A stretch of DNA of 64,000 bases from Paragordius varius. Its lineage: Eukaryota > Animalia > Nematomorpha. The notes below the pieces were generated by a model. It was not told where the DNA came from. It made no database searches and saw nothing but the letters and a program-made list of their open reading frames with translations. This document shows positions 319 to 36,749 of the stretch, in pieces (the stretch's first letter is position 1; every line of letters starts with the position of its first letter). The stretch is from contig OZ176056.1 of assembly GCA_964247055.1 (NCBI GenBank), positions 5,456,001 to 5,520,000 of the forward strand. Reading direction: 5' to 3'. The position numbers were made by a program, and so were the translations under genes.

Positions 319-339
319 CATTAGCATCATCATCATTTT
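319..339 (-). CDS. 21-nt phase 1-1 micro-exon V1, (E)NDDDAN(G)
   Basis: ctttttag|AA AAT GAT GAT GAT GCT AAT G|gtatgt. Consensus acceptor and donor; paralog at 21826-21846. Confidence 0.5.
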
Positions 340-1167
340 CTAAAAAGACAAAAAATATTTATCAACAATCAATATAAGTAACTCATTCAAAAAATCAACA
401 ATTGATGTCAATACTTAGGAAAATTATCCTGAACAAAATAAAATAGCGCTCTTTTAAATGAACTCCAAATTAATTACAATAATAAAATTGGTGTTAATGC
501 AAAAATATGTTTGAAATTTAATAAGATATTAGTTATTAAATGACAGATAGCATATACAAATCTATACAAATGACGTTTAAATATGAGCAATATTTAATAC
601 TTGAGAAATATTAATTTCCAAAAAATTGGTTTTGTTCAAAAAATGCAATTTTACTAATTTTCGTATCGTTGGATATATATATAAATTATCTTTCAGAAAA
701 AAAATTTGTGGATGAAAATAAACATATAAAAGTGATTTTAAGCATTCATATAATTTTTAGTTTCCAGTTTAAGTTTCATCAAGGTAGCGCTTACTTTATT
801 CAAATTATTTTAATAGCCCAGACTATAATTGATATTTCAAAAGAACTACTGAATGAAATTGCCCTAATTTAAATTTATGCTTCAATATGAATTATAAAAA
901 TAGGCCGAATTTTTTAAAATTTTGTTTTGAAAAAATCTATATTAAACTATTTTGACACCATTTTTATTTTACCAAATTGCAAAATATCGTATTTATTTAA
1001 TTTTTAATCTAATTTAAGTAATTTTTTGATTTATAACACAAACATTGTCAGAAAAAATAGCTAATTACATTATTGTTATATTTAGCTAATAAACACATGT
1101 CATGTTTTATTTAGACCTACATGAGTGGACTTATCAAGTATATAATTTATGATAAATAAATTCTTAA

Positions 1168-1275
1168 AGTAATGGAATATCAACGACCAATCCGTACAAA
1201 TCCCTGTAACATGTTTCTACACAAATTAATATTTTTACTGGGATGTGTACGAATATTTGGTTGATTTTCCACTAT
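1168..1275. repeat. ~105-bp palindromic MITE-like element (also about 13580, 16523, 22496, 32796; half copies about 2335, 23668, 41862)
   Basis: About 40-bp arms TGGAATATCAACC..CGTACAAATCCC.GTAA around a spacer of about 25 nt. Confidence 0.6.
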
Positions 1276-1532
1276 CCTATATTGCATAAATTTTATACTT
1301 TGATCTCCCACTTATGTAAGATCTCAAAATAAAACAGAAATTTTTTATACGCTCGCTGAATATCCTTAATTTTTACTTTTTGCCCTATTTCTATTATTTC
1401 ATTTAGGTCGCAAACAAATAATAGTTTTTACGGCAAATGAATAAGCTGTCATAATCTATAACAAAAAAAAATTTTTTTGTTAACAATTACAAAGATATCT
1501 AAAATATAAAATGTCTATAATTGTCATTATAC

Positions 1533-1571
1533 CCATTCCATTTCCTGCTGGAGTTGTTACTTTGGATGGCA
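1533..1571 (-). CDS. 39-nt linker exon T-A, (V)PSKVTTPAGNGM(G)
   Basis: aaaacag|TG CCA...ATG G|gtataa. Four copies in the window; indels relative to T-B are whole codons. Read-through to the stop at 1480 is an alternative model. Confidence 0.6.
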
Positions 1572-1959
1572 CTGTTTTTATAAAAATGTATTTGTGAATT
1601 TATTATAAAATATATAAACTTCGCATAAATTTTTAAGAATTTGTTATTAATCATAACATACCATATTACAATTTTTAAATTCATAATATACTAGAACTAA
1701 AAATGGAGAATGTTGTGTGTATAGTTTTAAGTTTAGAAACAAGAGAAGTATTAAGACCATTTTACATAAAATAAAAATATTTATAAAATTTAGAATCTAT
1801 TATGCATTATAAAGCAACCTATCTTGATATATTAAAATATAAATAAATTATCAGTAAAATCAATTATAGTGTTGAAAATTGTGTTTATCATTTTTATATT
1901 TGTTTTTTATCATTTTATGAGTATTTTTCCTTTTAATTTAATTTAAATAAAAAAATCAC

Positions 1960-2196
1960 CTGTGATTTCAACTTCACCGCGATACAGAATTTCAGATTGT
2001 GAAGAGACAATTATGGTTTTATTGGTGAGTGAATTCATATCGGTATTTATAGTAACACTAGTCGCATTCAGATTGGTATACAAATATTTTCCTTCGCTGC
2101 TTACATTATACGATGATATCCCATCTTTCGATTCCCAATCCAATTTGATAGATGAGTCATCAATTCTGGTCCAGTTTATTTGGATAATTTCAAATT
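1960..2196 (-). CDS. FN3-like domain exon, variant A (237 nt, phase 1-1)
   Basis: gtctag|AA TTT GAA...ATC ACA G|gtgatt gives FEIIQINWTRIDDSSIKLDWESKDGISSYNVSSEGKYLYTNLNATSVTINTDMNSLTNKTIIVSSQSEILYRGEVEIT. Has S-x-x-L-x-W, Y-x-V and TSVTI motifs and 4 N-x-S/T sequons. FN3 call is by eye. Confidence 0.65.
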
Positions 2197-5100
2197 CTAG
2201 ACAGATTCATACTATGCTTATATATCAAAATTTTCAATTTTTTTGTCATCTGGTTTATGAGTGTTATACTGTTTTATTTTGAAATCTTACATGAAAGGAA
2301 TTATGTAGTATATAATTTTTGCAAAATAGCATTTAAAAGTAGTGCAATATTAACCATCAATCCGTGCAAATCCCAACAAAAATATTAATTTGTTTTAAAA
2401 AAGACATTCCATTTTCCATAGAGACTCAAATATTTTTTATATTAAAGCCCTATTCTGGTCAAATCTATATAATTATAACACGAACACGATATGAATAAAT
2501 ACATTTTTTTAAATCATATATCATTCGAGAGCTAAAACCTTCTGGATAATAAATACAAATAAATATTCGTTTTAGGAAATAAAAAAACTCAAAAGCTAGG
2601 ATTATCACGTAAAAGCTATCTGTAGGAATTATATTCATATAAACTTTATAGGGAAAAATATTTATTATATGGCGTTTAAAATTGAAACAAGCCTAAAATA
2701 TTATCAATATTTGGACAAAATCGGATGTAGCGTATAATTATATTATTATTTCTGTATAACTCAAAAAAACACGACCATATTAATTTAATTTATCCAAAAT
2801 TAAAAATTTTCGTGCGATTTCAGCTTTTGAACAGGGCTTTTAGGTATAAATTCTCTCTAAATAAATAATTGAATTAAAATTTCTGCTTGAATCGTATAGA
2901 AATCGTTTGCATGATAATTATATCAAAGCTTTGGTACAAAATATATGATAAATCCCTTTCGGAGCAAAAATTTTTTTATTTTATATGGGCATTAATCTTT
3001 TAAACACAATATATTGGATGTTTTATCCATATAGTATATATAAAAATTAAAATAAACAATTCAAATATGACGCTAAGTGCGTTTTGGTTTTTATAATAAG
3101 ACTTATAAACATATCTGAGAGGTTTGGATTTTTAATGATGAATAAAATTAAGTTGACGCGTTTTCACTAATATTTTTGATTTTATTTAAAATAACTTTTT
3201 CAGTATTTGAATCGTATCTTTATTCCCTAAAGCTTTTAGCTATCAAATAATATATAGTTGACAAACATATATTTAGAGCCCATTACTACCGCAGAGTGTT
3301 AACATTTTCGCTTTTTAATATTAGTCGATATCAATTCTCTTTGTTACATATGCCTCTCAAATTAACCAGAAATTTATACTCTCATGCTGTTATAAATTAT
3401 CGTATCATTAAAGCCTTTGTTTGCCTTATTGAACTTTTAAAAAGGATTCTGGTTTGGTTAGTTATTTAACACCAAATTTTGTACATTTTTTTAGCAAAGT
3501 TGTAAATTGAGTAAATGGAATTTTAAGCCGTTCATTAATTTAATGCGCATAAACCAATATATCTCTGAATTATTCATATAATATCAGAATCTCCTACCTG
3601 TGTTGCAAATAATAAATATCTGGTAAGTAAAAATAATTTAATTGTTCTATACGAGATATATTTATAGTCTTTGCTTTTTCCACTAAGTAAAAAGCATGAG
3701 TCTAATTTAATTGATTTCTTATCATAACACTATTGTTTTCCAGATTAACGGCAATCGATATATTGTTGTATGTTAAATTATATTTTAATTTATCTTGGTT
3801 CCATTTCAATGTTATGGATTCGTCATCATTAATAGTATAATTACATGTTGTGTCAATTAACCATTGTTAATAAAAAAATGATATTGTTAGAATTTTTTAA
3901 AAAATAACAAATAATATTGGTAGAAGAGCTTCATGTAATATCAAAAATTTAATTTCAATAATTTAATCTTCTATAAAGGGCACTTTATTTCAAGCAGCTG
4001 TTTTTGGGTGCATTTTAATATTATGGAAATTATTTAATAATATTCCATAATTTAAATTGGCTTGAATATCTTTGCATTTATAATTTGGGGTTAAAAGAAA
4101 ACAGATTTTTAAGATTTAATACATAATTATTTACTAGGGAAAAATTCGAGTCCCCATCATTAATAAATGATTTAAAATTTTCTTAGAATAATGTAATTTT
4201 GTTAGAAAGTATCAAATTAATTTTATTTCCTAAGTTGTTTAATACAATTAAATAGCTCTCTATTATAGCAATGGTTTTTAAATCTGTTATTAAATAAATA
4301 TTTATAGTTTATTTGTATTCTGTGTACATAAAAAAAGAAACTGTCTTTTTCTTATTGATTTCTAGTTCAAACTGATTCAAAAAATTAGCTATCATTTATA
4401 GAGTTGTTTAAATGTTATTTTTCTCAAATTATAAAACTACCATTAATTCGGTTAAATTAGATTATAATATAATAAAATAGACGCCAGACTTTCATAAAAT
4501 TGTAAAATTAAATTATGGCCACATTTATAGATATTAAATAATGAAAGTCAAATTTGAATTATATATAATTAATTATATAATTAAATAAATTACCCTCGAA
4601 AGCTAATAAAAACCTGGATTTGTTTTTAAACTTAAGCTGATTATTCTAACATTTAATTTATATTTTATATTTACTTAGCGTGTCATAAATTAGGGACCGT
4701 TAAAAGTTTGAGGAGTTTATTTAGAATTACCTAGACTCGCGTTTAAATAAAATTACAAAAACGGTATTAAGCATAATTTCCAATATTTAGCTAAATATCT
4801 AATGGCCCCAAACTAACAATTTGGTAGCCATAAAGAAGTTATTAATTACACACATCAAAAGCTTAGAATGATAGTTTATCTCAGACCGCAGAAATACTAT
4901 GGATTGGACATAAACTATGTCTGGATGTCGTATGATGGATAAATTGGCTGGTACTATTTTTGTAAAGTTTATTTACTTTTTTAACAAAACACCGAATTCT
5001 GCATGTTAAAATTTAATAAGAAAATAATTAAAAACATAAAAAATTTTAAAAAACTAATTTGTATAAAATCCTTTTACGATAAAATTATGCGCCATCAAAA

Positions 5101-5330
5101 TCAAATAATATGTTTATATGGCGAACTATTTAAAAAAACTCTAATATTAGCTAACTATGTGTTTTTTAATTCAATATATACTAACAATGTGTGCCTCAAC
5201 ATATATCAAATCATAAATAATAAAAATTCTATAATCTCTGCACTTTAATTATTGATGATTTTAGTTCGAATATTTTTTTCAAAGAATATTTACAAGATCT
5301 TGGCAAATAAATCAATTAAAAAATAAATAC

Positions 5331-5393
5331 CAGCCATAGTATTTGATTTTTCATTTTCTTTAGCTTCCATCCCAGATCCATTATTTGCCACTT
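5331..5393 (-). CDS. mini-exon R1, (E)VANNGSGMEAKENEKSNTMA(G)
   Basis: tatccag|...GCT G|gtattt; 63 nt, open frame. Confidence 0.55.
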
Positions 5394-6136
5394 CTGGATA
5401 TTTTAAAATACATACTATATAATTGATATATCTAAGTTATATATTGCTAAATTGATCATAAATTAGTTTTTATAATTTAGAGACAACCCACTATATCTCT
5501 CAATCGGAAAAATATAATCTCAAAATTATGATTTTTAGCAATCGGCTATTTTTAAATAATTTGATATAATTTTTTACAAAAAATAAGTAAAGTGGTGAAC
5601 ATCAGAAGGTTAAATAATTCACATTTTTAAATTTAATAATTTGGCTACTTTTGTTAAAAAAGCTTTCATATAATATATAAAATAAAGTGTAATAATCCAT
5701 CAGATTGAAATAATTAAATTAAATTTAATTTTTTGAATATAATCGGACTTTCATCAAAATTTAATTATTTAAAGAATTTAAAAATCATTACTTGGCCTCA
5801 TCGGAGTTTAATAATATGTTTGCAAAATTATTTCTACATAAAAAGATAGTCACCTAACAAGCAAACTTTACAATTGGGGGTTTATAATTATCAATCCATT
5901 TAAAGAGAATCTTATGTTATTTGTTTTTTAAGCGGTGACTTTTAAGTTCATGCCATCTATGTTTACTATAAAATAATTTTTGAATTTGGGCACCACTGCC
6001 CTTATTTTGGTGTTATGTTACATTTGAGAATAAGACCATAAATATGATAATATAAATTTATTAGATAATGTTACTCAAAATATTTAATCATTGATATAAG
6101 AAAAATAACTTTTATTTATTAGAAAAAAAAATATAC

Positions 6137-6175
6137 CAATTGTATTTGTATTATTAGCAGGATTGTCCATGTTTT
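6137..6175 (-). pseudogene. mini-exon Q1 with damaged acceptor, NMDNPANNTNTI(G)
   Basis: Donor G|gtatat is intact. The acceptor segment is deleted relative to the duplicate at 27462-27509, and the frame is still open. Confidence 0.4.
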
Positions 6176-6326
6176 CTTTGTTAAATATTATTTAGAGTAA
6201 AATATTTAATATTTTACATTGTTATATTAATACTAAAACATCATTAGTAAAATGCAAGGTGTAATATTTATCTGAATATATTGCAAAAAGGGTTGTGCAG
6301 TTAAAATATGCCCTTATAGCCTCACA

Positions 6327-6910
6327 CAGTGGCGGAACTATAATTGTGAGCCGCCCCGCAAGCTTTAAATACTGGCAACCTTTCCCCCCAAAAAATCGTA
6401 TGAAGTTATCTTTTGATCTGGCGCCTCACTTAGATTCCTAAACATATATTTAAACCTATCCTACTATGAAGATAAAATTCCTAATTCAAAAGACAGCTTG
6501 TTAAGTGAAGCTTTCTCTATTTTTGGCATCACATATTCGTTGATATAAACACATTGTCAACATATGCGTAGAATACGGGCCCATCTAGGAATAGCAGCGG
6601 GGAAACTGCTTAAATATAAATTAATTGCTAAAAGTTATTTTTACGGAATTCGGATAAATAAATTTTGACATTTGTTTAGTCAGAATAAATTATTTTAATA
6701 TGGTTTTTTGATATTATAATAACGGGGCATCGAACCGGTCCTAAAAAAGTAGAATTAGAACCGGGCTTTAATTTCAAAATGAATCGCTTCCTAAAACAGC
6801 AACAGGTTCCAATACGACTCATAAATATGAAATAATGTATTGATTAAATGGAACATTAATGTGCGGACCGCCAAGTTTTTAAATTTTGAGAATGGCCCTC
6901 TTAAATTGCC
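6327..6910. mobile_element. possible hAT-like non-autonomous remnant (duplicate at about 27657-28250)
   Basis: Starts CAGTGGCGGAACT and replaces the repeat-unit sequence seen in sibling units. Contains GAACCG-type motifs like those at 58510-58760. No second TIR or TSD found. Confidence 0.3.
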
Positions 6911-7117
6911 GAGCATTGTTTTGTTACTCCTTATCAAAATTACGAAATCGGTAATATTGTTTTAAAGAAGCAATATTATTTGATTGCGTTAAAGCTATAG
7001 AAATGGTTAGGGAACCTTATGGTGATGGGCCGCGTAGCCCCTTAAAGCACTACCTCTTTAAATCAAAAAATATCTTTTTAAATAATTACTTTTGCCATTA
7101 TGTAATATAAAATCTAC

Positions 7118-7174
7118 CAATTGAAGTGTTACGGTCAGGCTGTCGACTCGATTCACTCTTTTTTTCTTTTGCCA
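7118..7174 (-). CDS. mini-exon U2, (V)AKEKKSESSRQPDRNTSI(G)
   Basis: actttag|TG GCA...ATT G|gtagat; 57 nt. Confidence 0.55.
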
Positions 7175-7912
7175 CTAAAGTTATTATGAAAAATAAAGTC
7201 TTAAATTTATATAATTATATTATTAATTATATCATTATAAGATTTCAATTTTTCTGTAGGATATCTGATAAAAAAATTGAAATTTTTGCATTATGTAAAT
7301 TATCTCAGTAAGCCTAGTGATATGTTCAGGCTACCACTGGATTCACTGTATTTTCTTTTGACACGAAAGATATTATTTTAAATGAATAAATTTATATAAT
7401 TATAATTATAAAATATATCAATATGAGGTTTCAATTTTCCTGTAGGATAACCCTAGCCTCTAAGTATGCAATTAAGCTATTACGCATGATTCAGATAAAT
7501 AGGCTGTTAAATATTCTTGAATTTTTTGAACAAAACACCGAATTCGGATGTTAAAATTGAAGAAGAAAATAATTATAGACATATCATAATAAGTAGTTAC
7601 AACAAAACCAATTTGTTTAATAATCTTTTTATGTTAAAATTAATATAAAATAGCCTACTAAAATTATTTCGATATAGTGCCATACCGCTAATGATAACAT
7701 TATTGCAATCAATAATTATTACTAAACTTAGAATGTGCTTTTAAATATACTAACAAAATGTAGTGCCTCACCATATATCAAATCATAAATAGTTAAAATT
7801 CTATGAGCTTTAAGACACTATAACTATTGATGATTTTAGTTACAATCCTTTTTTTTTCAAAGAAAATTTGTATCAAAGATCTTGGCAAAAAATTAATTGA
7901 AAAAATAAAAAC

Positions 7913-7972
7913 CAGAGATATTGCTAGGTTTTACACTCTCTCTAGATTTCATATCAGATCCAGCATTTGTTT
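7913..7972 (-). CDS. mini-exon R2, (E)TNAGSDMKSRESVKPSNIS(G), weak splice sites
   Basis: ttaag|...TCT G|gttttt; 60 nt, open frame. Confidence 0.4.
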
Positions 7973-9186
7973 CTTAAGATTTTAAAATACATAATATTAA
8001 TTATTATTCAATCAAATTAAATGCTAAATCGGTCATAAATGTATCATAATTTTCATTCAACTCACTAATTCTAAAATTTATCATAAACAGGTTAGTTACA
8101 CATTTAAACTAACAATCAAACTTTACAGTTGGGATTTATTATAAAACGTTAAATATTCAATCAAAGATATCAATATATAGAGCCTTATATTTTATTTGTT
8201 TTATAAGCGACTTTCACGGTCATGTCATCTAAGTTATTGTAAAATTAATTTTTTGGATTTGGGTATTGCCCTTGCTGATATTACATCATATTTTTCTAAA
8301 ATTGCTTATATATTAATTATTCTAAAAGAAAAATACGATTTTTTGATCGTTATTATCTGATAATATCATAATAATTTAATATCTCAAGTTTTATCATTTT
8401 ATTTTTAATTATGGTTATTTTTCATTTTTTGCCTAATTTTGATTTTCTATCAATATTTGAAAAACTAAGTCGTTTATATAAAAATTTTCTGGCAAAAAAT
8501 TCGCTGGTTAGAACTTCATGAAAAAAAATAGATATAAAAATTGACCTTCTTTTTTACACACAGTGAAATAGTTGTTAACTAATTTATATCTATAAATATA
8601 TTTAAAGATTATTTAATAATATGCCGTAAATTGGCTTTTCGATTAGCAATCACAAATTGGAAATAACTTTCTTTAATCTTGGGGCCCCCTATAACAATTT
8701 TCTTACATATTTTTACGAGATTGTATATCATAATTTTGTGTTTAAAATTTAAAAATTCGCATATAAAAGATTAAATTTGAGCCATGTCAAAAATTAAATT
8801 ATTTAGGCATGGGAATCATGTATTAAATATTACATTAAAATTATTTTTATTCACAAAAAAACGATTAATATATCTATAATCCAAACTTCTCAAAACTTAA
8901 TATAAAACAAATAGCCTACTAAAACTTTTTACGCTAATGATACCTATGAATTTTTTCATAAATATTATGCCATCAAAACTCAAATGTGTATTTTGGCGAA
9001 AAATATAGTAGAATGTGTTGAATTCAATATATATATTAAATAATTTTAATGGCTTAACATATCTCAAATTATAAATTTTAAAAATTGTATGACCTCTAAA
9101 CTGTAATTATGTTGATTTTAGTTGCAATCCTTTTTTAAGATAATTTGTGAGAAACAATCAAGAAAAATAATTAGATAACTATATAC

Positions 9187-9240
9187 CAGTGATATTCTTT
9201 GGTTTTACGTTTTCTTCCATTCTAGATCCATTTGTTACTT
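9187..9240 (-). CDS. mini-exon R3, (E)VTNGSRMEENVKPKNIT(G)
   Basis: aatccag|...ACT G|gtatat; 54 nt. Confidence 0.55.
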
Positions 9241-9897
9241 CTGGATTTTATAATACATAATATATAACTAATATATCTAAGTTAAATATTGCGAAATCGG
9301 TCATAAATGTAGTTTTTATAATTTTCATACCACCATATCTCAATCGGAAAATATAGAATAACTCAAAATGATTTTTAGTAGTCGGCTATTTTTGACGAGT
9401 AAGTTAAGTGTGTGAACCATCAGATTTTTCAATATAATTCAATTTTTTAAAAATTTAATAATTTGGATACTTTTGTTGTAAAACCTTTTACATATATAAT
9501 AAATAAAGTGCAATAATTCAGATTGAAATAATTAAAAATATTATAAAAAACAATATTTTAAATCTAATTAGAATGTCATAAAATTATTTTTCAATTTGCT
9601 ATGCATCGGACTCTAAAAATATATTTGCAAATATATTACATAACAGGTTAGTTACTCATTTTATCTAATAACCAAAATTTACATTTGGGGGTTAAAAATA
9701 ATCAATTCTTCTAAATTATTTGTTTTATAAACGGTTTTTACGTTATTGTTGTCTAAGTTAACTATAAAATTAATTTTTTCAGAATAATATCAGCATAAAT
9801 ATGATAATATATAAATAAAAAAATAATCATATTCAAAATTATATTAAAACATTGATATACGAAATATAACTTTTAGCTATTATATGAAAAAATATAC

Positions 9898-9948
9898 CAA
9901 TTGGATTATTATTTTTAGCGGGCACAATGTCCATATTTCCTTTGGAAT
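9898..9948 (-). CDS. mini-exon Q3, (D)SKGNMDIVPAKNNNPI(G)
   Basis: attttag|AT TCC...ATT G|gtatat; 51 nt. Confidence 0.55.
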
Positions 9949-10808
9949 CTAAAATATTATTTAGAGTGAGGTATTTAATAATATAGTATAGATTGTTATA
10001 TTAATATAAAAACATCAGTAATAAAATGCGAGATCTAATATTTATAAGAATACATTGCAAAAAGGGTTCTGCGATCAAAAAATATACTCTTATAGGCTTA
10101 TAATCATTAAACGCTACTTGTTTTATAAATCTAAAAAAGCGTTTTTATTGATTGATAAAATATTTGTCTTTGGGAAAAATGCTATGTTTCGACTGTTCGG
10201 GAAAAACGTTTTATTGACTGGGAAAACGTTTCGATTGAATATAATTGTTAAACATACATCAATAACAGTATGATTACACATCTATTTCAAGACAACAACT
10301 CAATTTTATAATTATATTTGGGAGTTGACTAATCAACACTTTGTTTCAGATATTAATACAGGAGATTCGGTGTAAATTATTTTTATAGCAGATGTATTTA
10401 TCACAATTGACTTCGCGATCCGCATTTTAGGATCAAAAATCCGAAGGGTCACATTATCGAAATTGAGCACAAACATTTTATTTAATTTTTAACATGACTG
10501 TAAAAACTAATATTTATTTACATAATGTTGTTAATTTTTGCCAAAATTATCGAAATAGGAAAATTTGTTTTGGAAACAAAATTTTTTGATCCCAAATCTA
10601 TATAAATGGTTAGAGACCGGAGGATGATAGGCTGTTTAACACCCTGTGTAGTGTACTACCTTAATTGTGATACCATGTATTAAAATAATATCCACATAAA
10701 CGTGAAAATAAATTTAAGAAATAACTTTTATATAAAATATTTTTACTATAAAATATATTAATGAACCACTAATAAAAGAACTTTTGCCATTTGTAATATA
10801 TAATCTAC

Positions 10809-10868
10809 CAGTTGTAGTGTTATGGGCTTCAAACTCACCATTGGTTTCATTCTTATTTTGTTTTGACC
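10809..10868 (-). CDS. mini-exon U4, (G)SKQNKNETNGEFEAHNTTT(G)
   Basis: actatag|GG TCA...ACT G|gtagat; 60 nt. Confidence 0.55.
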
Positions 10869-11341: not shown

Positions 11342-11401
11342 GAGATATATTATTTGGTTTTCCACTTTCTTTAGATTCCATATCAGCTCCATCGATTGTT
11401 T
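11342..11401 (-). pseudogene. mini-exon R4 with lost donor, TIDGADMESKESGKPNNIS
   Basis: Homologous to R2 and R6. G|GT is replaced by C|AT, the acceptor is AAG, and the frame is still open. Confidence 0.4.
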
Positions 11402-17625: not shown

Positions 17626-17657
<32 letters not shown>

Positions 17658-17844: not shown

Positions 17845-17850
17845 AATATG

Positions 17851-23533: not shown

Positions 23534-26500
23534 CTAGACAGATTCATACTATGCTTATATATCAAATTTTCAATTTTTTTGTCATCTGGTTTATGAGTGT
23601 TATACTGTTTTATTTTGAAATCTTACATGAAAGGAATTATGTAGTATATAATTTTTGCAAAATAGCATTTAAAAGTAGTGCAATATTAACCATCAATCCG
23701 TGCAAATCCCAACAAAAATATTAATTTGTTTTAAAACAGACATTCCATTTTCCATAGAGACTCAAATATTTTTTATATTAAAGCCCTATTCTGGTCAAAT
23801 CTATATAATTATAACACGATATGAATAAATACATTTTTTTAAATCATATATCATTCGAGAGCTAAAACCTTCTGGATAATAAATACAAATAAATATTCGT
23901 TTTAGGAAATAAAAAAACTCAAAAGCTAGGATTATCATGTAAAAGCTATCTGTAGGAATTATATTCATATAAACTTTATAGGGAAAAATATTTATTATAT
24001 GGCGTTTAAAATTGAAACAAGCCTAAAATATTATCAATATTTGGACAAAATCGGATGTAGCGTATAATTATATTATTATTTCTGTATAACTCAAAAAAAC
24101 ACGACCATATTAATTTAATTTATCCAAAATTAAAAATTTTCGTGCGATTTCAGCTTTTGAACAGGGCTTTTAGGTATAAATTCTCTCTAAATAAATAATT
24201 GAATTAAAATTTCTGCTTGAATCGTATAGAAATCGTTTGCATGATAATTATATCAAAGCTTTGGTACAAAATATATGATAAATCCCTTTCGGAGCAAAAA
24301 TTTTTTTATTTTATATGGGCATTAATCTTTTAAACACAATATATTGGATGTTTTATCCATATAGTATATATAAAAATTAAAATAAACAATTCAAATATGA
24401 CGCTAAGTTTGGTTTTTATAATAAGACTTATAAACATATCTGAGAGGTTTGGATTTTTAATGATGAATAAAATTAAGTTGACGCGTTTTCACTAATATTT
24501 TTAATTTTATTTAAAATAACTTTTTCAGTATTTGAATCGTATCTTTATTCCCTAAAGCTTTTAGCTATCAAATAATATATAACAAACATATATTTAGAGG
24601 CCATTACTACCGCAGAGTGTTAACATTTTCGCCTTTTAATATTAGTCGATATCAATTCTCTTTGTTACATATGCCTCTCAAATTAACCAGAAATTTATAC
24701 TCTCATGCTGTTATAAATTATCGTATCATTAAAGCCTTTGTTTGCCTTATTGAACTTTTAAAAAGGATTCTGGTTTGGTTAGTTATTTAACACCAAATTT
24801 TGTACATTTTTTTAGCAAAATTGTAAATTGAGTAAATGGAATTTTAAGCCGTTCATTAATTTAATGCGCATAAACCAATATATCTCTGAATTATTCATAT
24901 AATATCAGAATCTCCTACCTGTGTTGCAAATAATAAATATCTGGTAAGTAATAATTTAATTGTTCTATACGAGATATATTTATAGTCTTTGCTTTTTCCA
25001 CTAATAAAGCATGAGTCTAATTTAATTGATTTCTTATCATAACACTATTGTTTTCCAGATTAACGGCAATCGATATATTGTTGTATGTTAAATTATATTT
25101 TAATTTATCTTGGTTCCATTTCAATGTTATGGATTCGTCATCATTAATAGTATAATTACATGTTGTGTCAATTAACCATTGTTAATAAAAAAATGATATT
25201 GTTAGAATTTTTTAAAAAATAACAAATAATATTGGTAGAAGAGCTTCATGTAATATCAAAAATTTAATTTCAATAATTTAATCTTCTATAAAGGGCACTT
25301 TATTACAAGCAGCTGTTTTTGGGTGCATTTTAATATTATGGAAATTATTTAATAATATTCCATAATTTAAATTGGTTGCATTGATAATTTGGGGTTAAAA
25401 GAAAACAGATTTTTAAGATTTAATACATAATTATTTACTAGGGAAAAATTCGAGTCCCCATCATTAATAAATGATTTAAAATTTTCTTAGAATAATGTAA
25501 TTTTGTTAGAAAGTATCAAATTAATTTTATTTCCTAAGTTGTTTCATACAATTAAATAGCTCTCTATTATAACAATGGTTTTTAAATCTGTTATTAAATA
25601 AATAATTATAGTTTATTTGTATTCTGTGTACATAAAAAAAGAAAGTACTGTCTTTTTCTTATTGATTTGTAGTTCAAACTGATTCAAAAAATTAGCTATC
25701 ATATATAGAGTTGTTTAAATGTTATTTTTCTCAAATTATAAAACTACCATTAATTCGGTTAAATTAGATTATAATATAATAAAATAGACGCCAGACTTTC
25801 ATAAAATTGTAAAATTAAATTATGGCCACATTTATAGATATTAAATAATGAAAGTCAAATTAGAATTATATATAATCAATTATATAATTAAATAAATTAC
25901 CCTCGAAAGCTAATAAAAACCTGGATTTGTTAATTTTAAACTTAAGCTGATTATTCTAACATTTAATTTATATTTTATATTTACTTAGCGTGTCATAAAT
26001 TAGGGACCGTTAAAAGTTTGAGGAGTTTATTTAGAATTACCTAGACTCGTGTTTAAATAAAATTACAAAAACGGTATTAAGCATAATTTCCAATATTTAG
26101 CTAAACAAATATCTAATGGCTCCAAACTAACAATTTGGTAGCCATAAAGAAGTTATTAATTACACACATCAAAAGCTTATTTAAGAATGATAGTTTATCT
26201 CAGACCGCAGAAATACTATGGATTGGACATAAACTATGTCTGGATGTCGTATGATGGATAAATTGGCTGGTAGTATTTTTTTAAAGTTTATATACTTTTT
26301 TAACAAAACACCGAATTCTGCATGTTAAAATTTAATAAGAAAATAATTAAAAACATAAAAAATTTTAAAAAACTAATTTGTATAAAATCCTTTTACGATA
26401 AAATTATGCGCCATCAAAATCAAATAATATGTTTATATGGCGAACTATTTAAAAAAACTCTAATATTAGTTAACTATTTGTTTTTTAATTCAATATATAC

Positions 26501-26649
26501 TAACAATGTGTGCCTCAACATATATCAAATCATAAATAATAAAAATTCTATAATCTCTGCACTTTAATTATTGATGATTTTAGTTCGAATATTTTTTTCA
26601 AAGAATATTTACAAGATCTTGGCAAATAAATCAATTAAAAAATAAATAC

Positions 26650-26712
26650 CAGCCATAGTATTTGATTTTTCATTTTCTTTACCTTCCATCCCAGATCCAT
26701 TATTTGCTACTT
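26650..26712 (-). CDS. mini-exon R1', (E)VANNGSGMEGKENEKSNTMA(G)
   Basis: tatccag|...G|gtattt; 63 nt. Confidence 0.55.
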
Positions 26713-27461
26713 CTGGATATGTTAAAATACATACTAAATTGATATATCTAAGTTATATATTGCTAAATTGATCATAAATTAGTTTTTATAATTTAGAGAC
26801 AACCCACTATATCTCTCAATCGGAAAAATAATATAATCTCAAAATTATGATTTTTAGCAATCGGCTATTTTTAAATAATTTGATATAATTTTTTACAAAA
26901 AATAAGTAAAGTGGTGAACATCAGATGGTTAAATAATTCACATTTTTAAATTTAATAATTTGGCTACTTTTGTTGAAAAAGCTTTCATATAATATATAAA
27001 ATAAAGTGTAATAATCCATCAGATTGAAATAATTAAATTAAATTTAATTTTTTGAATATAATCGGACTTTCATCAAAATTTAATTATTTAAAGATTTTAA
27101 AAATCATTTTTCAAACTTGGCCTCATCGGAGTTTAATAATATGTTTGCAAAATTATTTCTACATAAAAAGATAGTCACCTAACAAGCAAACTTTAAGTTG
27201 GGGGTTTATAATTATCAATCCATTTAAAGAGAATCTTATGTTATTTGTTTTATAAGCGGTGACCTTTAAGTTCATGCCATCTATGTTTCTGTAAAATAAT
27301 TTTTGAATTTGGGCACCACTGCCCTTATTTTGGTGTTATGTTACATTTGAGAATAAGACCATAAATATGATAATATAAATTTATTAGATAATGTTACTCA
27401 AAATTATATTTAACCATTGATATAAGAAATATAACTTTTATCTATTAGAAAAAAAATATAC

Positions 27462-27509
27462 CAATTGTATTTGTATTATTAGCAGGAACATTGCCCATGT
27501 TTTCGGAAT
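27462..27509 (-). CDS. mini-exon Q1', (D)SENMGNVPANNTNTI(G)
   Basis: tttcaag|...ATT G|gtatat; 48 nt. Confidence 0.5.
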
Positions 27510-28544
27510 CTTGAAATATTATTTAGAGTAAAGTATTTAATATTTTACATTATTATATTAATACTAAAACATCATTAATAAAATGCAAGGTCTTATATTT
27601 ATAATAATATATTGAAAAAGGGTTGTGCAGCTAAAATATGCCTAATAGCCTCACACAGTGGCGGAACTATAAGTTGTGAGCCACCCCGCAAGCTTTAAAT
27701 ACTGGCCAACCTTTGCCCCCAAAAAAATCGTATGAAGTTATCTTTTGATCTGGCGCCTCACTTAGATTCCTAAACATATATTTAAACCTATCCTACTATG
27801 AAGATTAAATTCCTAATTCAAAAGACAGCTTGTTAAGTGAAGCTTTCTCTATTTTTGGCATGCTCACATATTCGTTGATATAAACACATTGTCAACATAT
27901 GCGTATAATACGGGGGCCTATCTAGGAATAGCAGCGGGGAAACTGCTTAAATATAAATTAATTGCTAAATATTATTTTTTAGAATTCGGATAAATAAATT
28001 TTGACATTTGTTTAGTCAGAATAAATTATTTTTTATGATAATATGGTTTTTTGATATTATAAAAACTGGGCTTCGAACCGGTCTAAAAAAGTGGAATTAG
28101 AACCGTGCTTTAATTTCAAAATGAATCGCTTCCTAAAACAGCAACAGGTTCCAATACAACTTGATAAATATGAAATAAGATTGATTAAATGGAACATTAA
28201 TGTGCGGACCGCCAAGTTTTTAAATTTTAAGAATGGCCCATTAAAATTGCTGATCACTGTTTAAGTGTGTGATGAAAGTTTATCGAAAATTTGTTAACTA
28301 AAGATAAATTTCAAAATAACATGAATCAAAGGTTAAAAACATTAGAAAAATAATGCACATTTGTATACCAGAAAACATATGTTAGCCAATTGACTTAATA
28401 ATAAAATATGTGAAATAACAATCATTCTGTTAAAATTTAATGAATGTCCTTCAGGATTGCAATACAAAACATTTTTTACAATAAAGCTATTTCTCATACA
28501 ACGTTGTAAAATGAATTGACCCACATTAATGTGGTTGGCCTGCA

Positions 28545-31500
28545 TAACTTGCATATTCCATCCAACGTGCTTTAGGGCGCCCTTTCCCCTCTTGCCTTTC
28601 ACAATATAATCATCAATCTGTTTACCAATGTAAATATTAGCTCTTCTTTTAACATGTCCGAACCATCTAAAACGATTTACCATAAACTTTTGCGTTATTC
28701 GTTTGATTTCCGTACTTCCTCTTATGTAGACATTCTTCACCTTGTCATTCCTCGTTACACCGCACATCAATCTAAGCATTATCATTTCAGTAACCTCCAA
28801 GTTCTCTTCTGATTTCTTTATTGCCCATGTCTGTGAGTTGTACATCATTTTTGGCTGTACAACAGCACTGTAAATTTGACCCTTTACTTTTAGGTCAATA
28901 TTTTTGTCACACAAAACATATGAGATCTTTTTATAATTTGCCCAACTATTTCGAATTCTTAAATTAATATCAAGTGTTAAAGAACCATCTGCTGCTAAAA
29001 TCGCTCCTAAATATTTGCATTCCTCCTGTTTAATACCCATCCTTCTTCTAATTCTATTTCTCGTTTTTTCCCGCCAAAATTTATCAGTTCTGTTTTCTTT
29101 TTATTAACTTTTAATCCGCATCGTCGTAACACATCAATCCATTTACCCACCAATTCTTTCAATTCATGCAACTCGTCGGACAGCCTTATTAGGTCGTCTG
29201 CATAAAGAAAATAGAGCCACCATGTTGCCCCACTTCTTTTGAAATTTGGTCTAAGCATATTATAAATAGTAACGGGCTGATTGCAGACACCTGATAGACC
29301 CCTTCGTTTATTTTAATAGAACCTGACCCTGGTGTGTTTTAATTTTGGTTTGGGAATCGTACATGCATTTTAAAATCTTTTTGTACCTTTCAGGGACGTT
29401 TTTCCGTCTTAAGCTCCACCATATTGTGCGCCGTGGTATTCTGTCAAAAGCCTTTTCAATATCAATACAAATACCATGCAACTCCTTTTTCATTTCTATA
29501 TGCTTCTCGATTAGCCTTCTTACTGCGATCGGATCAATGGTGGACTTTCCTGAAAAAAAACCAAATTGATTACCCTCTATTATAACCATTTTTCTCATTC
29601 TTTTCTCTAATACTTTCTCAAATAACTTCATTGTATGCGACATCTCTAATTATTACAATCATTAATATCTCCTTTACCCTTGAAAATGGGAACAGTGAAA
29701 CTCTTCTTCCATTCGGTTGGTATCATGCCTGTAGTTACTACATTATTAAAAATATCCGTCAAAAATTCAATACCTTTCTCTGACATTATTTTCCAACAGT
29801 TTATGTTATTATCGTCCGGACCTGCAGCCTTATTTATTGACATCTCTTTCAAACCAGTCTGGACTTCTTCTTTTGTTATACTTTCAATATGCGCAGATAT
29901 ATAATCTGGTGTTTCAGGAATTTGTTTCATTGGCGCCCAATTCAAGCTCCTGGAAGTATTCTTTCCACCTTTTCAATATTTTCGATTCCTCAACGAGTAA
30001 TTTGCCGTTTTTATCTTTAATAGCTGTCCCGTAAGGGGGCAAGTCTAGCTTTCTTCTGTGTCTTTGTCGAGCAATTTTAAAAACTTTGTTTAGATCTTGC
30101 TTACTGTTTACCTCTTTATATAATGATGAAGTCTTTTCTTTTTTGACCAATTTTACAAGCCTTTTAAGTTCCTTATTAATCCTTTTACATTTTTCCTTGT
30201 CTCCTGCTTGGTGGGTAAACCTCCACATTTCAAAAGCTTTATTTCAGCCATGCCTCTCTATAAACCTGATTTCTGCCACCTTTCATTCCGCACACCTTAA
30301 CTCCCGCCTTCTTATTTTTTTTGGCGATTGAGACCAAACATTTTCTGGATCACTGTTCCTGTCTAGTATGCCTACCGTTTCTATAAATCTCTCTTTACTG
30401 TTTCTTAGGAATTCCCATTTAATTACCTTCGGCGCTATAAGCTTAGGCTTTTCGGCATTTATTGGTATATCTGTCATATATTTACACATAATTAAATTAT
30501 GTTGTGTGCTAATCTGCAGGTAGGTATGACTTTGCAGTCCAAAACAAACTTTAAAGACTTTCGTGGCAATAGAATATAATCCATTTGTAACTTCTTATTT
30601 CCACTTTCGTAGGTAATTAAGTGGCTATCCCTTTTAGTGTATTTGCTATAGCAATGTTATAGGATTGGGCAAATTTTAATAAACTAGCCCCTTCTTCATT
30701 TATGACCCCGTAACCTTTTCCGCCGTGCCAAGGCTCAAACCTCTCCTATTTTGTCCCACGTGCCCATTGAAATCACCACAAAATATGATTTCTTTGTCTT
30801 TCGTTAATGAAGTCATTTCTGCGTCTAACAAATCATAAAATTTATCTTTCTCTGGTTTAGCTAACCCTATCTGGGGGGCCTAAACGCTAAAGATAGTAAA
30901 AACCCTCTTATTTAACAATAGGTCGACACTTATAATTCTACTGTCAGCACGTCTAACCTCAATTACTTGATTGGCAAATCATGAACACACTATTATGGCG
31001 ACCCTACTGTAACCATCCGTAGAACCTGAATAAAACATTTTATAATTATCCTCTAATGTCTTAGTACCATTTCCACGGTATCTGGTCTCCTGAATGCCCA
31101 AAAAATTTACTTTTTTTACCCTCATAATTTAACTAAATCATATTACTTACTTTTTAACGAACCAACATTTATACTGGCAAAACACACTCTACAACATTCC
31201 TTATCCCTATTGACCCCTACCTCCGTGCAATGGCTGGATCTGGCCTGCACGCCTTACAAAAAACACCCATAAAAAACAAAAATACAATATAGAAGAATAA
31301 TAATAGATAAAACTAAAATATATAGGAACTAATATGTAAATGCAACCAAAAAAGAATCAAAAAATTTGAACCAAAAAATAAAAAAAAATACATAAATAAA
31401 TTATATCAATAAATAAAAATGAAATTAAATACGCATCTTTACAACTGAGGAATTAGAATTATGATTTGGAATATGTAATAATAAAACAATAAATAGAAAA

Positions 31501-31552
31501 ATTATAAGAAAAATATTATAAAGGTAATTACGCGCCATTTTTGAATGAATGT
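28545..31552 (-). mobile_element. RTE-clade non-LTR retrotransposon, near full length, frameshifted
   Basis: APE endonuclease start (INVGSL..FLGIQETRYRG). RT motifs IDIEKAFDRIPR and LYADDL. RTE C-terminal YNSQTW..EMIMLR..WFGHVKRR..GKRGKG. ORF pieces between 28342 and 30489. Confidence 0.9.
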
Positions 31553-31866
31553 CTCAGTAATATATAAAATTATCCATCAGATCGATATAATTAAAAATAT
31601 TATATATAATTTAGTATTTTAAAGATAATTAGACTTTAATCAAAATTTAATTATTTGGAGTGAAAAAAGTCATTTATCAAATTGCTATGCATTGGAGTCT
31701 AAATATATATTTGCAAAATTTATTAACAGGTTAGATAAACATTTGGCCTGACAACCAACTTTACAATTGGCGGTAATTAAAATTAATTAGTCATTGTTAC
31801 TCTAAATTATAATAAACCATTGATATAAAAATTATAACTTTATGCTATTATATAAAAAAAATATAC

Positions 31867-31932
31867 CAATTGGATTAGTGTCATTGTTAGCAGGCGCAAC
31901 CTTAGATGGACTCGCAATGTTTCCTTTGGAAT
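31867..31932 (-). CDS. mini-exon Q7'
   Basis: Duplicate of 15594-15659; splice sites retained. Confidence 0.55.
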
Positions 31933-33680
31933 CTTAAAATTAGTTAGAGTGAAATAATTAATAATTTACATCGTTATATTAATAGAACATTATTAATAAA
32001 ATGCGAGGTCTATTGAAGAATATATTGCAAAAAAGGGTTTTGCAGTCAAAAATTTATACCCTTATAGCCTCATAATCAAACGCTATTTTCTTGTTTTATA
32101 ATTCACAAAAGCGTTTTTATAATTGAGAAAATATTCTTGATTGGGTAAATTATAAATTAATCGGAATATCAATCAAACTTTTTCAAATGTTCGGGAAAAC
32201 GTTTTGATTGACTGGGAAAACGTTTAGTTCGATTAGAAAATTTCGATTCATATGATTATTAAACAAAATATATGAATAACAGTATGATTACACATTTATT
32301 TTATGAACTAGATTTTATCACTATATTTGGGAGTCGACTAATCTAAACTTTGTTTTAGATATCAAAACAGGAGATTAATTACTTTACGGTGTAATTTATT
32401 TTGGGTTTAGAGCATTTTTAACATTATGCACCTACTAAATTAATATACAATGGTGTTAGTTCTTGCCAAAATTCCGAAATATCAAATTGTTTTAGAGAAG
32501 CAATAATATTTTAATGTTAAAGCTAAAAAATGGTAAGGAAACCGATGGATAATGGGCCGTGTTTTTAACACCCTCTGTAATGTACTACCTTAATTGTGAA
32601 ATTTCGAAATAGGAAAATTGTTTTAGGGCAGCAATATTATTTAATGTCAAAGCTATAGAAATGGTTAGGAAACCGATGGATGATATGCCGTGTTTTTAAC
32701 ACTCTGTGTAATGGACTACCTTATTTGTTTTATTTGGCATTCTCACATGATTAGGAATTATAAAGTATAAATTTTATGCAAAATAGGAGATAAAATTAGA
32801 GGAGTATCAACCAAAAATCCTTACAATTTCCTGTAACAAGTCTGTTTTATGACAAATTAATATATTTGTATTGGAATTCGTACGGATTGTTGGATGATAT
32901 TCCAGTAATTTACAATCCTATTTTGCATGAATCCCTCATTTAAGAATCCGAATAAACACTCAAAATTTTTATACACTCATGAACCAGATGACAAAAAAAG
33001 CAAAAATAAAAAACAATATTTTTGGTATTATTTTGATATAGAAGTTTATTTTTTTGAATAAAACATGAATGTTAAGATTTAAATATTGAGTTAAAAATAT
33101 TAAAAAAATTATTTTAATATAGTTTCATTAAATTTTTAGTATTTTAGGTGGGAAAAAAGAAAAACGCCATCTTTTTACCTGAAATTTTATAGAAACCTTA
33201 ACTATATGATTTTAGGCTTTTTATATATTGAAATTATCTCTTAAAATGATAATAAACGATATTATTTCAGATCATTATTTTTTGAAACCGATTTCGATTT
33301 TCTCTCAATCTAGTTTGACAACAAATAAAAATTTTTGCGGCAAATAAATACGATGGTCAAAGCTATCTTATGAAAAAAAATTTTTTCGTTAAAAATTTTT
33401 TTGCACACAGTATATATATATATATATATGTATATTTTCGTCTTTAATTGCAATTTATTGATTTCTTAATCAGAAACCAACAAACAAAGTGGTAATGAGC
33501 GATAAACTAAAAAATTATAACTTCTATGATAAATTTTTTAATAAAAAGTTAGTAGATATTTGGACTGCAAATACTAGGTAAATGTTATTATCAAATGATA
33601 TTAAATTAATGCGAAATCATTAAAAAATTTATAAATGCAAAGATATGTAAAATATAAAATGTCTATGAATGTCTTTATAC

Positions 33681-33719
33681 CCATTCCACTTCCTAATGCT
33701 GGAGCTGTTACTTCAAGCA
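33681..33719 (-). CDS. linker exon T-B', (V)LEVTAPALGSGM(G)
   Basis: Duplicate of 17368-17406 with P>L and T>A. Confidence 0.6.
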
Positions 33720-35542
33720 CTGTTTTTATAAAAATATTTTGGAAATTAATTATAAAATCTATAAATTTGAATTTTGATTAAATTTAACATAAATTAATAA
33801 AAATTTGTCATTTTAAACAATAAAATATCATATTACAATTCTTAGATTAATAATATACAGAACTAATGGAACAATATTAGGTATATATTAGCCATTTAAT
33901 TTAGAAACGAGATGTTTTAAGGTATTTTATTACATAAAATATATATATATATATATATATATAATTTTAAAATCTTTATATATGCATTTTTAAGCGACCT
34001 ATCTTGATTTATTAAAATATCAGGAATAATATCAATTATGTAAGATTGTGGTTATACAACCTTTTTTTTGCGAATGGTGTTATAAAAATGTATATGACGT
34101 TAAACCATTTAAATTTGTTTATATTATATTTTTATAAATATTTTTCTTTAATTTAATATGAATTATATATATATATATATATATACATACATACAAATAT
34201 TGGTTTAATCAAATTTTGTATATTTTCACTTTTGTCTCAATAATTTCAATATAATCACTACAACATTTTGATAATGTTTTTCACATTTTTTATACCTTAT
34301 GTTTAACGTGGAGGCAGGGGCCGAAAAATGTCGCAATGTAAATGTTGATCGTTAAGAAATAAGATATATAGATCAACTATGACGCTAAAAATATAAATTT
34401 TTTAGGCATTCAATAGACGAATTACCATGGAAATGGTACCAAAACCTTATAGGGTAGATTTCCAATCAGTTTTTAGGATGTATTTACATTAGCGTGATGA
34501 TATAGGAGGTAGGGCGACTGACTCATACACTGTGTGCCAGAGTTATCACCCCTAAACTACGCATTTCCATCATCACTGTCAGCCCTTTGTAAACGAGTGT
34601 TAATACAATTTAAATCCTTACCCTTTATAAAAAGGGAAAAAAAAGATTCTAAACAGTATATTTTTTTATATTTTATATATATTATGTGATTCCCAAATTT
34701 TTCGGTTTTAATGCTGCTGTTACACATTACATGCTTCTCAAATAAGTTTCAATTGATACTACATTTAATTATATCACGGTACGCAACAAAAATAAATGTT
34801 AATGATGTATTCGATATCTAAAAGCCTCAGGATAATAATATTATATATGGGGTAAAATACTAAAATAAAGTCAAATTTTTTCTCTTTTTAGCCATAATTA
34901 AAAAATGGCATTTTTAGTGCCTTAACGTCTAGTATAATTTAATACAATAGATGAAAACACCAAAAATTAATTCTAATATAAAATTTTAAACGAAAATTAT
35001 CATAAAGATTTTACATTTTTTTCGGAGTGCCTCAGATCTTATAAGAATATGAGCTAAAAATCGCGATTTGGCGTCATACTGGCATTAAACTTGTTAATAT
35101 GCGGTAAAAGATTTTGATATTTATTAAAACATTCATATTATATATAAAGTTTAACCAAATATAGCCTTTAAAAAAGTTTTAACCTTATATAAAAAAGAAA
35201 TTTTTTGAACGTGTCAATGTGCAATTTTTTAGCTAATTATAAATCTTTAAGGTCCTCCGATAAAATTAGAAATTTTATTGATAATATTTTGCGTTTGAAA
35301 ATATCCTTATATAGTAAAAATATAAAATTTAGTTGATGGGCTTTCATCTATAAAATTTAATTTTATTTGACAGGTTCATAAAGCCTAATACTTATTAAAT
35401 AACGTTTTTAAGTATTTATTCGCATTCAGTAATTTAATATTTATTACACCTAAACTTTTAGCTATCGAATGGTATATGATTCATTATCCTTTATTTTTGG
35501 ACCCTTTTTTGCCGCATACTATATTTAAATAAATTAAATCAC

Positions 35543-35776
35543 CTGTAATATTAGCTTCACCGTAATACACAGTATTACCAAATTCTGAAGAGACAATTAT
35601 GGTTACATTGATGAGTCCAATCATATCGGTAATTATAGTAACACTAGTCGCATTCAGATTGGTATACAAAATTTTTCCTTCCCTGCTTACATTATACAAT
35701 GATATCCCATCATTCGATTCCCAATCCAATTTGATAGAGGAGTCATTATTTATGGTCCAGTTTATTGGGAAAGTTA
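35543..35776 (-). CDS. FN3-like domain exon B'
   Basis: Duplicate of 19270-19503 with N>T and M>L. Confidence 0.7.
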
Positions 35777-36521
35777 CTGAAATATATAAATTATAAAATT
35801 TAGTAATACTAGACATATTTATACAATGTTTGTTGTGTTTATAAATTTCGCTGCAAAAGTTTATTTTGTTATTTAGTATACATAAAATATAAGTTTTAAA
35901 AAGATTGTTTATTACAATATTCGATTCTATATACAATCATAAGAGCAATTATTCACTCTCTCAGTTATTTAATGGGTGAGTGTGTAACATATAGGTTTGT
36001 TGGTATGCTTATTTTGAGTTAAATATTTTGCAATTGGGGTTAGAGAAAAAGTTACTGTTTTCAAAACATGATAAAACCTAATACGATCATGTAAATGAAA
36101 ACCCCCTCTAATTCAAATAATTGAAATGACCATTAATAGTTCTCTCTAATGCATATTAAAATCCTCATAAAAACTATTTTAATTTTAACCAATTTTAGAG
36201 TAATTTAATCTGATATCGTTAATAGTAAAGCCCAAAAATACTTTTAAGTTTAGAAATAAGAGAAGTATTAAGACCATTTTACATAAAATAATAATATATA
36301 TATAATTTAGAATCTATATCTATGCATTTTAAAGCAACCTATCTTGATTTATTAAAATATAAAATAAATATATCAGTAATAAAATCAATTATAGTGTTGA
36401 AAATTGTGCTTGCACAGCCTCTTTATTTGCAAATGCTGTTGTAAAAAAATATATGAGGCTACACCATTATTATATTTGTTAATATTATTAAGTATTTTTC
36501 TTTTAATTTAATTTGAATCAC

Positions 36522-36749
36522 CTATGATAACTTCACCGAGATAGGTAAATTTATCATATTGTGAAGAGACAATTATAGTTGTATTTTTGGCACACATATC
36601 GGTACTTATAGTAGCACTAGTCGCATTCAGATTGGTATACAAATTTTTTCCTTCGCAGCTTACATTATACAATGATATCCCATCAATCGAATTCCAATCC
36701 AATCTGAAAGATAAAGAGTCTTGTCTGGTCAAGTTTACTGTAAGAGGTT
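36522..36749 (-). CDS. FN3-like domain exon, variant C (228 nt, phase 1-1)
   Basis: atgtgttcag|AA CCT CTT...ATC ATA G|gtgatt gives PLTVNLTRQDSLSFRLDWNSIDGISLYNVSCEGKNLYTNLNATSATISTDMCAKNTTIIVSSQYDKFTYLGEVII. Confidence 0.7.

Follow-up and report, generated by a model that had tools for sequence, protein, structure and literature searches.

Several described gene systems build extracellular proteins from exons that can be added or removed in frame. Tenascin-C contains alternatively spliced fibronectin type III (FN3) repeats, and CD45/PTPRC contains glycosylated cassette exons ahead of its FN3 domains, the exons being phase 1-1. In the Dscam clusters, many versions of the same half-domain, near equal in length, are used one per transcript through docking-selector RNA pairing. 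Flatworm micro-exon genes (MEGs) have exons of 3–81 bp, introns of up to 5 kb and secreted products (PMC10526429), and schistosome MEGs show raised ratios of non-synonymous to synonymous substitution rates (dN/dS) and transposon enrichment (PMC4350168). Symmetric exons in general have been linked with disorder and modular evolution (PMC3632108). Here we analyse a window of 64,000 nucleotides from the nematomorph Paragordius varius (contig OZ176056.1, positions 5,456,001–5,520,000), whose minus strand carries, at 319–36749 in window coordinates, an array of candidate exons combining FN3-like domains with micro-exons. We found no account of micro-exon genes joined with FN3 domains in a search of the literature.

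The array comprises 25 intact units bounded by AG and G/GT (the slash marks the exon end), namely five FN3-like exons of 228–237 nt and 20 micro-exons of 21–72 nt, the latter falling into classes T (four), Q (six), R (six), U (two) and V (two). Two further members, an R copy and V', are dead, both having lost the donor. Read along the minus strand, the units form a tandem array of the superunit FN3B-T-Q-R...-FN3A-T-V, with a period of ~21 kb in self-comparison. One superunit copy is full, one is young and carries a deletion, and one is older and truncated, with FN3C as its FN3A-type exon. The introns between units measure 0.45–2.3 kb or more. We think it probable that the array is the inner part of one long gene, or of a few tandem genes, for a lineage-specific glycosylated extracellular protein made of FN3 exons and micro-exon linkers. 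We infer its transcription, secretion, continuity as a single gene and any biological role. The units, in the order in which they would be transcribed, are as follows.

36522–36749, minus strand: FN3C, 228 nt, phase 1-1, ttcag/AA...G/gtgatt, open; protein 59–62% identical to FN3A and FN3B
35543–35776, minus strand: FN3B', 234 nt; two substitutions relative to FN3B, both non-synonymous
33681–33719, minus strand: T', 39 nt, LEVTAPALGSGM
31867–31932, minus strand: Q', 66 nt
27462–27509, minus strand: Q3', 48 nt
26650–26712, minus strand: R5', 63 nt
23297–23533, minus strand: FN3A', 237 nt; two substitutions relative to FN3A
22864–22902, minus strand: T1', 39 nt
21826–21846, minus strand: V'', 21 nt, DKHYYAN, intact
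21497–21517, minus strand: V', dead; donor lost, G/GT to A/AT
19270–19503, minus strand: FN3B, 234 nt; member of the FN3 alignment
17368–17406, minus strand: T2, 39 nt
15594–15659, minus strand: Q0, 66 nt
13337–13396, minus strand: R1, 60 nt
12801–12872, minus strand: Q1, 72 nt
11947–12018, minus strand: R2, 72 nt
11342–11404, minus strand: dead R copy; donor destroyed, TCT/catat
10809–10868, minus strand: U1, 60 nt
9898–9948, minus strand: Q2, 51 nt
9187–9240, minus strand: R3, 54 nt
7913–7972, minus strand: R4, 60 nt
7118–7174, minus strand: U2, 57 nt
6137–6175, minus strand: Q3, 39 nt, weak acceptor (acaaag)
5331–5393, minus strand: R5, 63 nt
1960–2196, minus strand: FN3A, 237 nt; acceptor shifted upstream after a 27-nt deletion
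1533–1571, minus strand: T1, 39 nt
319–339, minus strand: V, 21 nt, ENDDDAN

The units were listed by a script that reports every AG...GT stretch open in phase 1. The script recovers every unit of a preliminary description of this window, with good polypyrimidine-AG acceptors and with donors G/GTAT, G/GTGA or G/GTAG. That description had reported ~25 stop-free minus-strand units with lengths in multiples of three, flanked by AG and G/GT; all of these sites are present, and each of the 25 intact units is divisible by 3 and open in phase 1. Its list of unit starts holds for AA, AT, TA, TG and GG, which give junction codons E, D, V and G, while the GC start that it also named occurs in no unit. 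Since all exons are phase 1-1 and end in G, duplication, loss or skipping of any of them would keep the frame, and the residue at each joint could only be E, D, V or G. The gene must continue past the start of the window (coordinate 1), beyond V.

In comparison with tenascin-C FN3 repeats, fibronectin extra domains and CD45/PTPRC, the locus likewise devotes one phase-1 symmetric exon to each FN3 domain, so built that modules could be added, lost or skipped in frame, and it likewise joins predicted glycosylated spacers to FN3. Unlike in those genes, the spacers are split into tandem-repeated micro-exons of 21–72 nt whose splicing is predicted; no orthology to them is detectable, and no signal peptide, membrane span or catalytic part is seen in the window. 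With the MEGs the locus shares chains of symmetric micro-exons, long transposon-rich introns, fast evolution and expansion within a lineage. MEG products, however, are small and disordered, with no folded domain, whereas here five FN3-type domains are confidently predicted to fold. A conceptual product was made by joining every intact unit except the 21-nt V'' (24 of 25; 2178 coding nt, 725 residues); in it, FN3 exons contribute 1170 of the 2178 coding nt, about half, and micro-exons are not the majority. The signal-peptide first exon and the exon skipping of MEGs are also not seen here. Dscam resembles the locus in the tandem duplication of exons for an Ig-superfamily-like surface protein, with diversity as the proposed purpose. 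The layout differs: the units are of five unlike kinds, 21–237 nt long, with micro-exons in an interleaved Q-R-(R)-U order; each FN3 exon specifies a whole domain, and there are no arrays of alternative versions of one segment. The likeness to Dscam suggested earlier thus does not hold for the layout.

The domain assignment of the large exons is based on structure prediction and profile searches. An alignment of the five FN3 copies spans 78 residues, 42 of its columns being invariant. An AlphaFold2 model of the 78-residue exon product, built on FN3A as the first row of the five-copy alignment, is a seven-strand sandwich (pLDDT 89.5, pTM 0.77). Foldseek searches of PDB, Swiss-Prot and AFDB clusters place FN3 domains at the top and over most of each list, the best matches having TM scores of 0.6–0.7 by query and the matches including integrin beta-4, chitinase A1, receptor tyrosine phosphatases and Robo; an ESM Atlas feature search also yields FN3/Ig-like clusters. 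When a profile built from the five copies was searched against 1.84 billion representative proteins, it matched 46 proteins with many FN3 domains each (best 8.5e-15). The matches lie within Pfam fn3 domains, as with residues 242–300 of protein P0002 in fn3 232–306. The best matched stretch of P0001, which has nine Pfam fn3 domains, is 36% identical to FN3B over 58 residues. These are generic many-FN3 proteins, mostly bacterial, and none of the representative proteins matches the profile below 1e-30. A word-index search with a 110-residue open reading frame (ORF) and exact look-ups of two ORFs returned nothing. The earlier assignment of the large exons as FN3-like is supported by the model, by the Foldseek ranks and by the profile matches at fn3 residues. 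Because the Pfam fn3 model is silent, the profile matches are distant and the look-ups are empty, the predicted domain is a divergent FN3 that has neither a recorded close relative nor an annotated product. In all five exons the 5′ boundary precedes the first strand by 1–5 residues and the 3′ boundary follows the last strand, both in phase 1; each folded FN3-type domain would be specified by a single exon of 228–237 nt.

Frame and strand statistics support the interpretation that the units act like coding exons whose frame is kept open by selection. Specifically, the 17 non-redundant units (1452 nt) contain 0 stops in the used frame, compared with 33 and 62 in the other two. A blind filter requiring phase 1-1, a terminal G, a GT[AG] donor, GC >= 0.30 and a pyrimidine-rich upstream stretch retains 19 loci (2121 nt) on the minus strand of positions 1–37000 and 4 loci (231 nt) on the plus strand; 16 of the 19 are units listed earlier, and between 37 and 64 kb ~5 unrelated loci pass on either strand. 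In family alignments, with the dead member included, gap runs are a multiple of 3 in 16/20 cases inside units and in 37/108 cases in the flanks (Fisher p=1.7e-4), which is the triplet-indel enrichment that the preliminary description had proposed as a check. The four non-triplet gap runs inside units lie at shifted acceptors or in the dead copy. Among the young duplicates, 738 nt of exon contain one indel, an in-frame one of 3 nt, where the intron rate predicts ~4.8.

These statistics make it highly improbable that the units are chance or transposon-borne open frames merely resembling exons, an explanation suggested by the placement of the micro-exons in repeated units of 1–4 kb whose introns also align. 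The in-frame indels and the confident FN3 fold argue against it as well. No transposase, terminal repeats or other transposon marks are seen around the units. Moreover, X1 is an independent DNA run, recognised as genomic by contigs that continue from exons into introns, and in it the FN3 core is covered at only ~5x the depth of its neighbours, which fits a few paralogs and not a high-copy element.

The sequence of the linkers is consistent with an extracellular product. Between the domains, micro-exons of four related kinds (T, Q, R and U), together with V, would provide short polar spacers bearing glycosylation sites. In composition the linkers are acidic and polar, with an abundance of N, S and T; N-I-S, N-I-T or N-T-S closes most of the R and U units. 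The 725-residue conceptual product contains 44 N-x-S/T sequons, twice the 22 +/- 3.9 of shuffled sequences, in keeping with the glycosylated linkers claimed earlier. In addition, four sequons are invariant in FN3A, FN3B and FN3C while a third of the other residues differ. The excess and the conservation together give indirect support for entry into the secretory pathway. The label 'mucin-like', applied earlier, is a loose one, the linkers being N/S/T-rich but not P/S/T-rich.

Comparison of the FN3 paralogs indicates fast change. Similarity among FN3A, FN3B and FN3C is limited to the exon and ~45 nt upstream; FN3A and FN3B are 86% identical in the exon and 55% identical, the noise level, in the downstream flank. 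These two exons differ by 2 synonymous and 31 non-synonymous changes (dN/dS 4.6), and both pairs with FN3C give dN/dS of 1.2–1.4. The local intron substitution spectrum sets a neutral expectation of 24% synonymous and 5–7% stop-creating changes, relative to which the synonymous deficit between FN3A and FN3B has P about 0.005 and the stops seen number 0. For the micro-exon linkers, the ratio of non-synonymous to synonymous differences per site (pN/pS) is 0.86. The rapid evolution proposed earlier agrees with these ratios. Frame, splice sites and glycosylation sites would be retained by selection even as residues are replaced at the neutral rate or faster; proteins that face an outside partner evolve in this way.

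The FN3A exon is itself a mosaic. Its 5′ two-thirds group with FN3B, and its 3′ third and both flanks group with FN3C, so that the exon tree ((A,B),C) conflicts with the flank tree ((A,C),B). Synonymous divergence between FN3A and FN3B is 0.04, far below the divergence of their introns. Because the informative sites are mosaic, the comparison points to sequence exchange between paralogous FN3 exons. The locus itself would have grown by tandem duplication at several scales, from Q-R(-R-U) units of 1–4 kb to the superunit of ~21 kb.

Several observations weigh against a functional gene for a secreted FN3 protein. Neither a first exon nor a last exon with a stop was found in the window, and neither a signal peptide nor a membrane span; a scan for signal-peptide exons is unspecific in such AT-rich DNA, where ~20 hydrophobic ORFs occur by chance on this strand. 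The Pfam fn3 model (PF00041) gives no match even at E<=1 on the ORFs holding FN3B and FN3C. As weak negative evidence, none of the RNA runs searched with the FN3C-FN3B' stretch matched, and three transcriptome assemblies with the same species label have 0 contigs matching 31860–36760. The 100 nt of intron on each side of the micro-exons are as conserved as the exons, and identities in the far flanks are at the noise level of forced alignments. Conservation alone therefore does not mark the micro-exons as coding, and the case for them rests on frame, openness and splice sites. Furthermore, dN/dS near or above 1 is also expected of a recently dead gene, and the locus contains the two dead members as well as a decayed FN3-like relic in an intron.

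The last points would fit an array of once-coding exons that died recently and is now a decaying pseudogene, its intact look a matter of youth. A retrotransposon and a 5-kb insertion inside the locus, described below, and the lack of RNA contigs in the three assemblies fit this explanation too, as does the equality of exon and intron substitution rates between young duplicates, which at 1–2% divergence give a selection test no power. The older paralogs speak otherwise. At 14–27% divergence they show zero stops or frameshifts in the used frame where ~2–4 stops per comparison are expected, indels inside units are in-frame, and the synonymous deficit between FN3A and FN3B points to selection for change, not drift. 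The insertions, moreover, are confined to introns. We regard a dead array as distinctly unlikely.

The relic is an FN3-like open stretch (NYTINDDESITLKWNQDKLKYNLTYNNISIAVNLENNSVMIRN) in the intron ahead of FN3A, present in all three copies of that intron (3705–3866, 25020–25181 and 43244–43368). It is 35–40% identical to the first half of the FN3 units and is without usable splice sites, and 30 nt are deleted from its oldest copy. The relic is probably a domain exon that has died. In tblastn of the window with the unit peptides, no plus-strand copy was found, and none beyond 37 kb except this relic. Antisense ORFs of 81–124 codons run across FN3A (1962–2282, plus strand), FN3A' (23350–23724, plus strand) and FN3C (36587–36832, plus strand). 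They are probably a by-product of codon make-up, because FN3B has no long antisense ORF.

With no first or last exon in the window, one gene is not separable from tandem genes. The array could thus be a tandem family of separate small genes, each superunit having its own signal-peptide exon and last exon, a possibility that we consider somewhat unlikely. The superunit FN3B-T-Q-R...-FN3A-T-V does repeat at ~21 kb, and FN3B' and FN3B each have upstream of them a hydrophobic ORF with an ATG start and a phase-1 end (36190–36277 and 19944–20037, respectively). However, the two candidate first exons differ N-terminally because the duplication junction cuts through, their donor G/GTTAAA is unlike the other donors, and such ORFs number ~20 by chance on this strand. 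In addition, no stop-bearing exon was identified between V'/V'' and FN3B, and V and FN3B are both in phase 1, so that read-through from one superunit to the next would stay in frame.

The young duplication affects how the number of units is to be read. In self-comparison, 1–6921 and 21185–28262 are 96% identical, and the block pair B/B' (14882–20012 and 31160–36259) is 96–98% identical. The second copy (20012–36259) holds eight of the 25 intact units; it is without nine micro-exons and still in frame. At all 31 sites that separate B from B' outside high-copy repeats, X1 has a single allele, with the copy-1 base at 17 sites and the copy-2 base at 14, single contigs being fine mosaics of the two, and contig depth in block B equals that of the unique FN3C region. 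Because two diverged paralogs should show two alleles per site, block B looks single-copy in the X1 individual. The second copy may thus reflect copy-number variation, or the assembly of two haplotypes one after the other, and the count of ~25 units may be inflated by the young duplication, with 17 as the non-redundant intact set. Should the second copy prove allelic, it would be a structural variant missing nine micro-exons with the frame intact, and would thereby illustrate what the symmetric design permits.

Other sequencing runs also contain DNA of this locus. Near-identical sequence occurs at low depth, in introns and exons alike, in runs that bear the labels of four other organisms. They carry DNA of the same species and hence provide no comparative signal; apparent FN3B variants in them are FN3A states mapped to the wrong paralog. 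Near-identical DNA of the locus is found in runs X2 and X6–X10, filed under six other organism labels, with X6–X9 at 2–10x. Those samples could be mislabelled or closely related, or could contain the animal's DNA inside other organisms, as for a parasite in its hosts.

A further possibility, which we regard as doubtful, is that transcripts skip varying subsets of the symmetric exons, so that one locus would yield many surface isoforms varying in the length of the stalk and the number of domains, as fluke micro-exon genes and CD45 do. With all exons in phase 1-1, any subset would be in frame; intron sequence adjoining the Q and R exons matches them in conservation, the fast evolution is like that of schistosome micro-exon genes (PMC4350168), and the Q donor lies inside an invariant 9-bp hairpin. 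The hairpin, however, is weak (−4.95 kcal/mol) and without covariation, and it neither supports nor refutes a role in splice-site masking. No transcript was found in the RNA runs or assemblies searched, the symmetry is equally explained by growth through duplication, with no need of alternative splicing, and the layout is unlike that of mutually exclusive exon clusters. Combinatorial exon use is a possibility that phase 1-1 symmetry allows and that was not seen. Folding, limited to the Q family, revealed no shared docking site for docking-selector pairing and one local hairpin only. In all Q units (15594–15659, 12801–12872, 9898–9948 and 6137–6175), the donor ATTG/GTATA can pair with TATATCAAT ~40 nt downstream.

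More broadly, we suggest very tentatively that a MEG-like system with FN3 domains evolved independently in this non-flatworm animal, possibly a parasite, and that exon skipping, together with structural alleles of differing exon number, yields a varying set of heavily glycosylated proteins at the surface, with selection favouring their diversification; one such allele may be represented by the window's second copy. If real and expressed, the glycosylated FN3 protein that we favour would be a member of a gene family missed by standard gene prediction and homology search. It would show that tiny frame-neutral exons, known from flukes, tapeworms and aphids, can combine with classical domain exons elsewhere in animals. 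The in-frame indels and the replacements above the neutral rate would make its products candidates for proteins at the interface with another organism or the environment. The locus also lends itself to the question of whether exon symmetry is of use in evolution, through duplication and loss, in regulation, through skipping, or in both. For annotation, such loci call for an exon finder capable of handling micro-exons and guided by long-read cDNA.

The window as a whole is ~23% GC and packed with repeats; the published Gordionus genome has 26.9% GC and 64% repeats (10.1101/2023.06.26.546503). Three features mark the structure of the locus outside the units.

28262–31160, minus strand: decayed non-LTR (long terminal repeat) retrotransposon, intronic, in copy 2, at the position of copy-1 6921–14882
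36803–41818, strand not assigned: 5-kb insertion with inverted arms of ~1.1 kb, 54 nt upstream of the FN3C acceptor
41856–44488, minus strand: older third copy of the intron preceding FN3A, 75–90% identical, which places FN3C in a third, truncated superunit

The retrotransposon, whose block limits are taken from self-BLAST, gives a Pfam RVT_1 match (E 1.2e-11), and its ORFs are broken over several frames. A GC-rich segment common to both copies (14882–14975 and 31160–31253) abuts its 5′ end in copy 2 and marks the precise boundary of block B in copy 1, so that the 8 kb by which the two copies differ begin at the edge of the retrotransposon. The arms of the 5-kb insertion (36803–37906 and 41121–41818) are inverted copies, 76–95% identical, and the insertion, which looks like a foldback or long terminal-inverted-repeat element, separates FN3C from the intron copy at 41856–44488.

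Other repeats are found within and beyond the array. In the X1 run, word depth over the intronic stretch 32188–33499 (and 15915–17220) is 100–400x that of the neighbours, indicating a very high-copy repeat, which contains a 131-bp tandem duplication (16196–16455 and 32469–32728). At 52038–56964 lies a tandem repeat of ~1.2 kb in 3–4 copies, 88–96% identical, each with a plus-strand ORF of 69–73 codons (e.g. 53469–53690) that has no Pfam match. The region ~46000–50000 is GC-richer (36%) and holds LTR retrotransposon remains on the minus strand, including an integrase zinc-binding domain (Pfam PF17921, E 1.3e-8) at 46953–47237 and an ORF resembling a gag zinc knuckle at 49037–49342.

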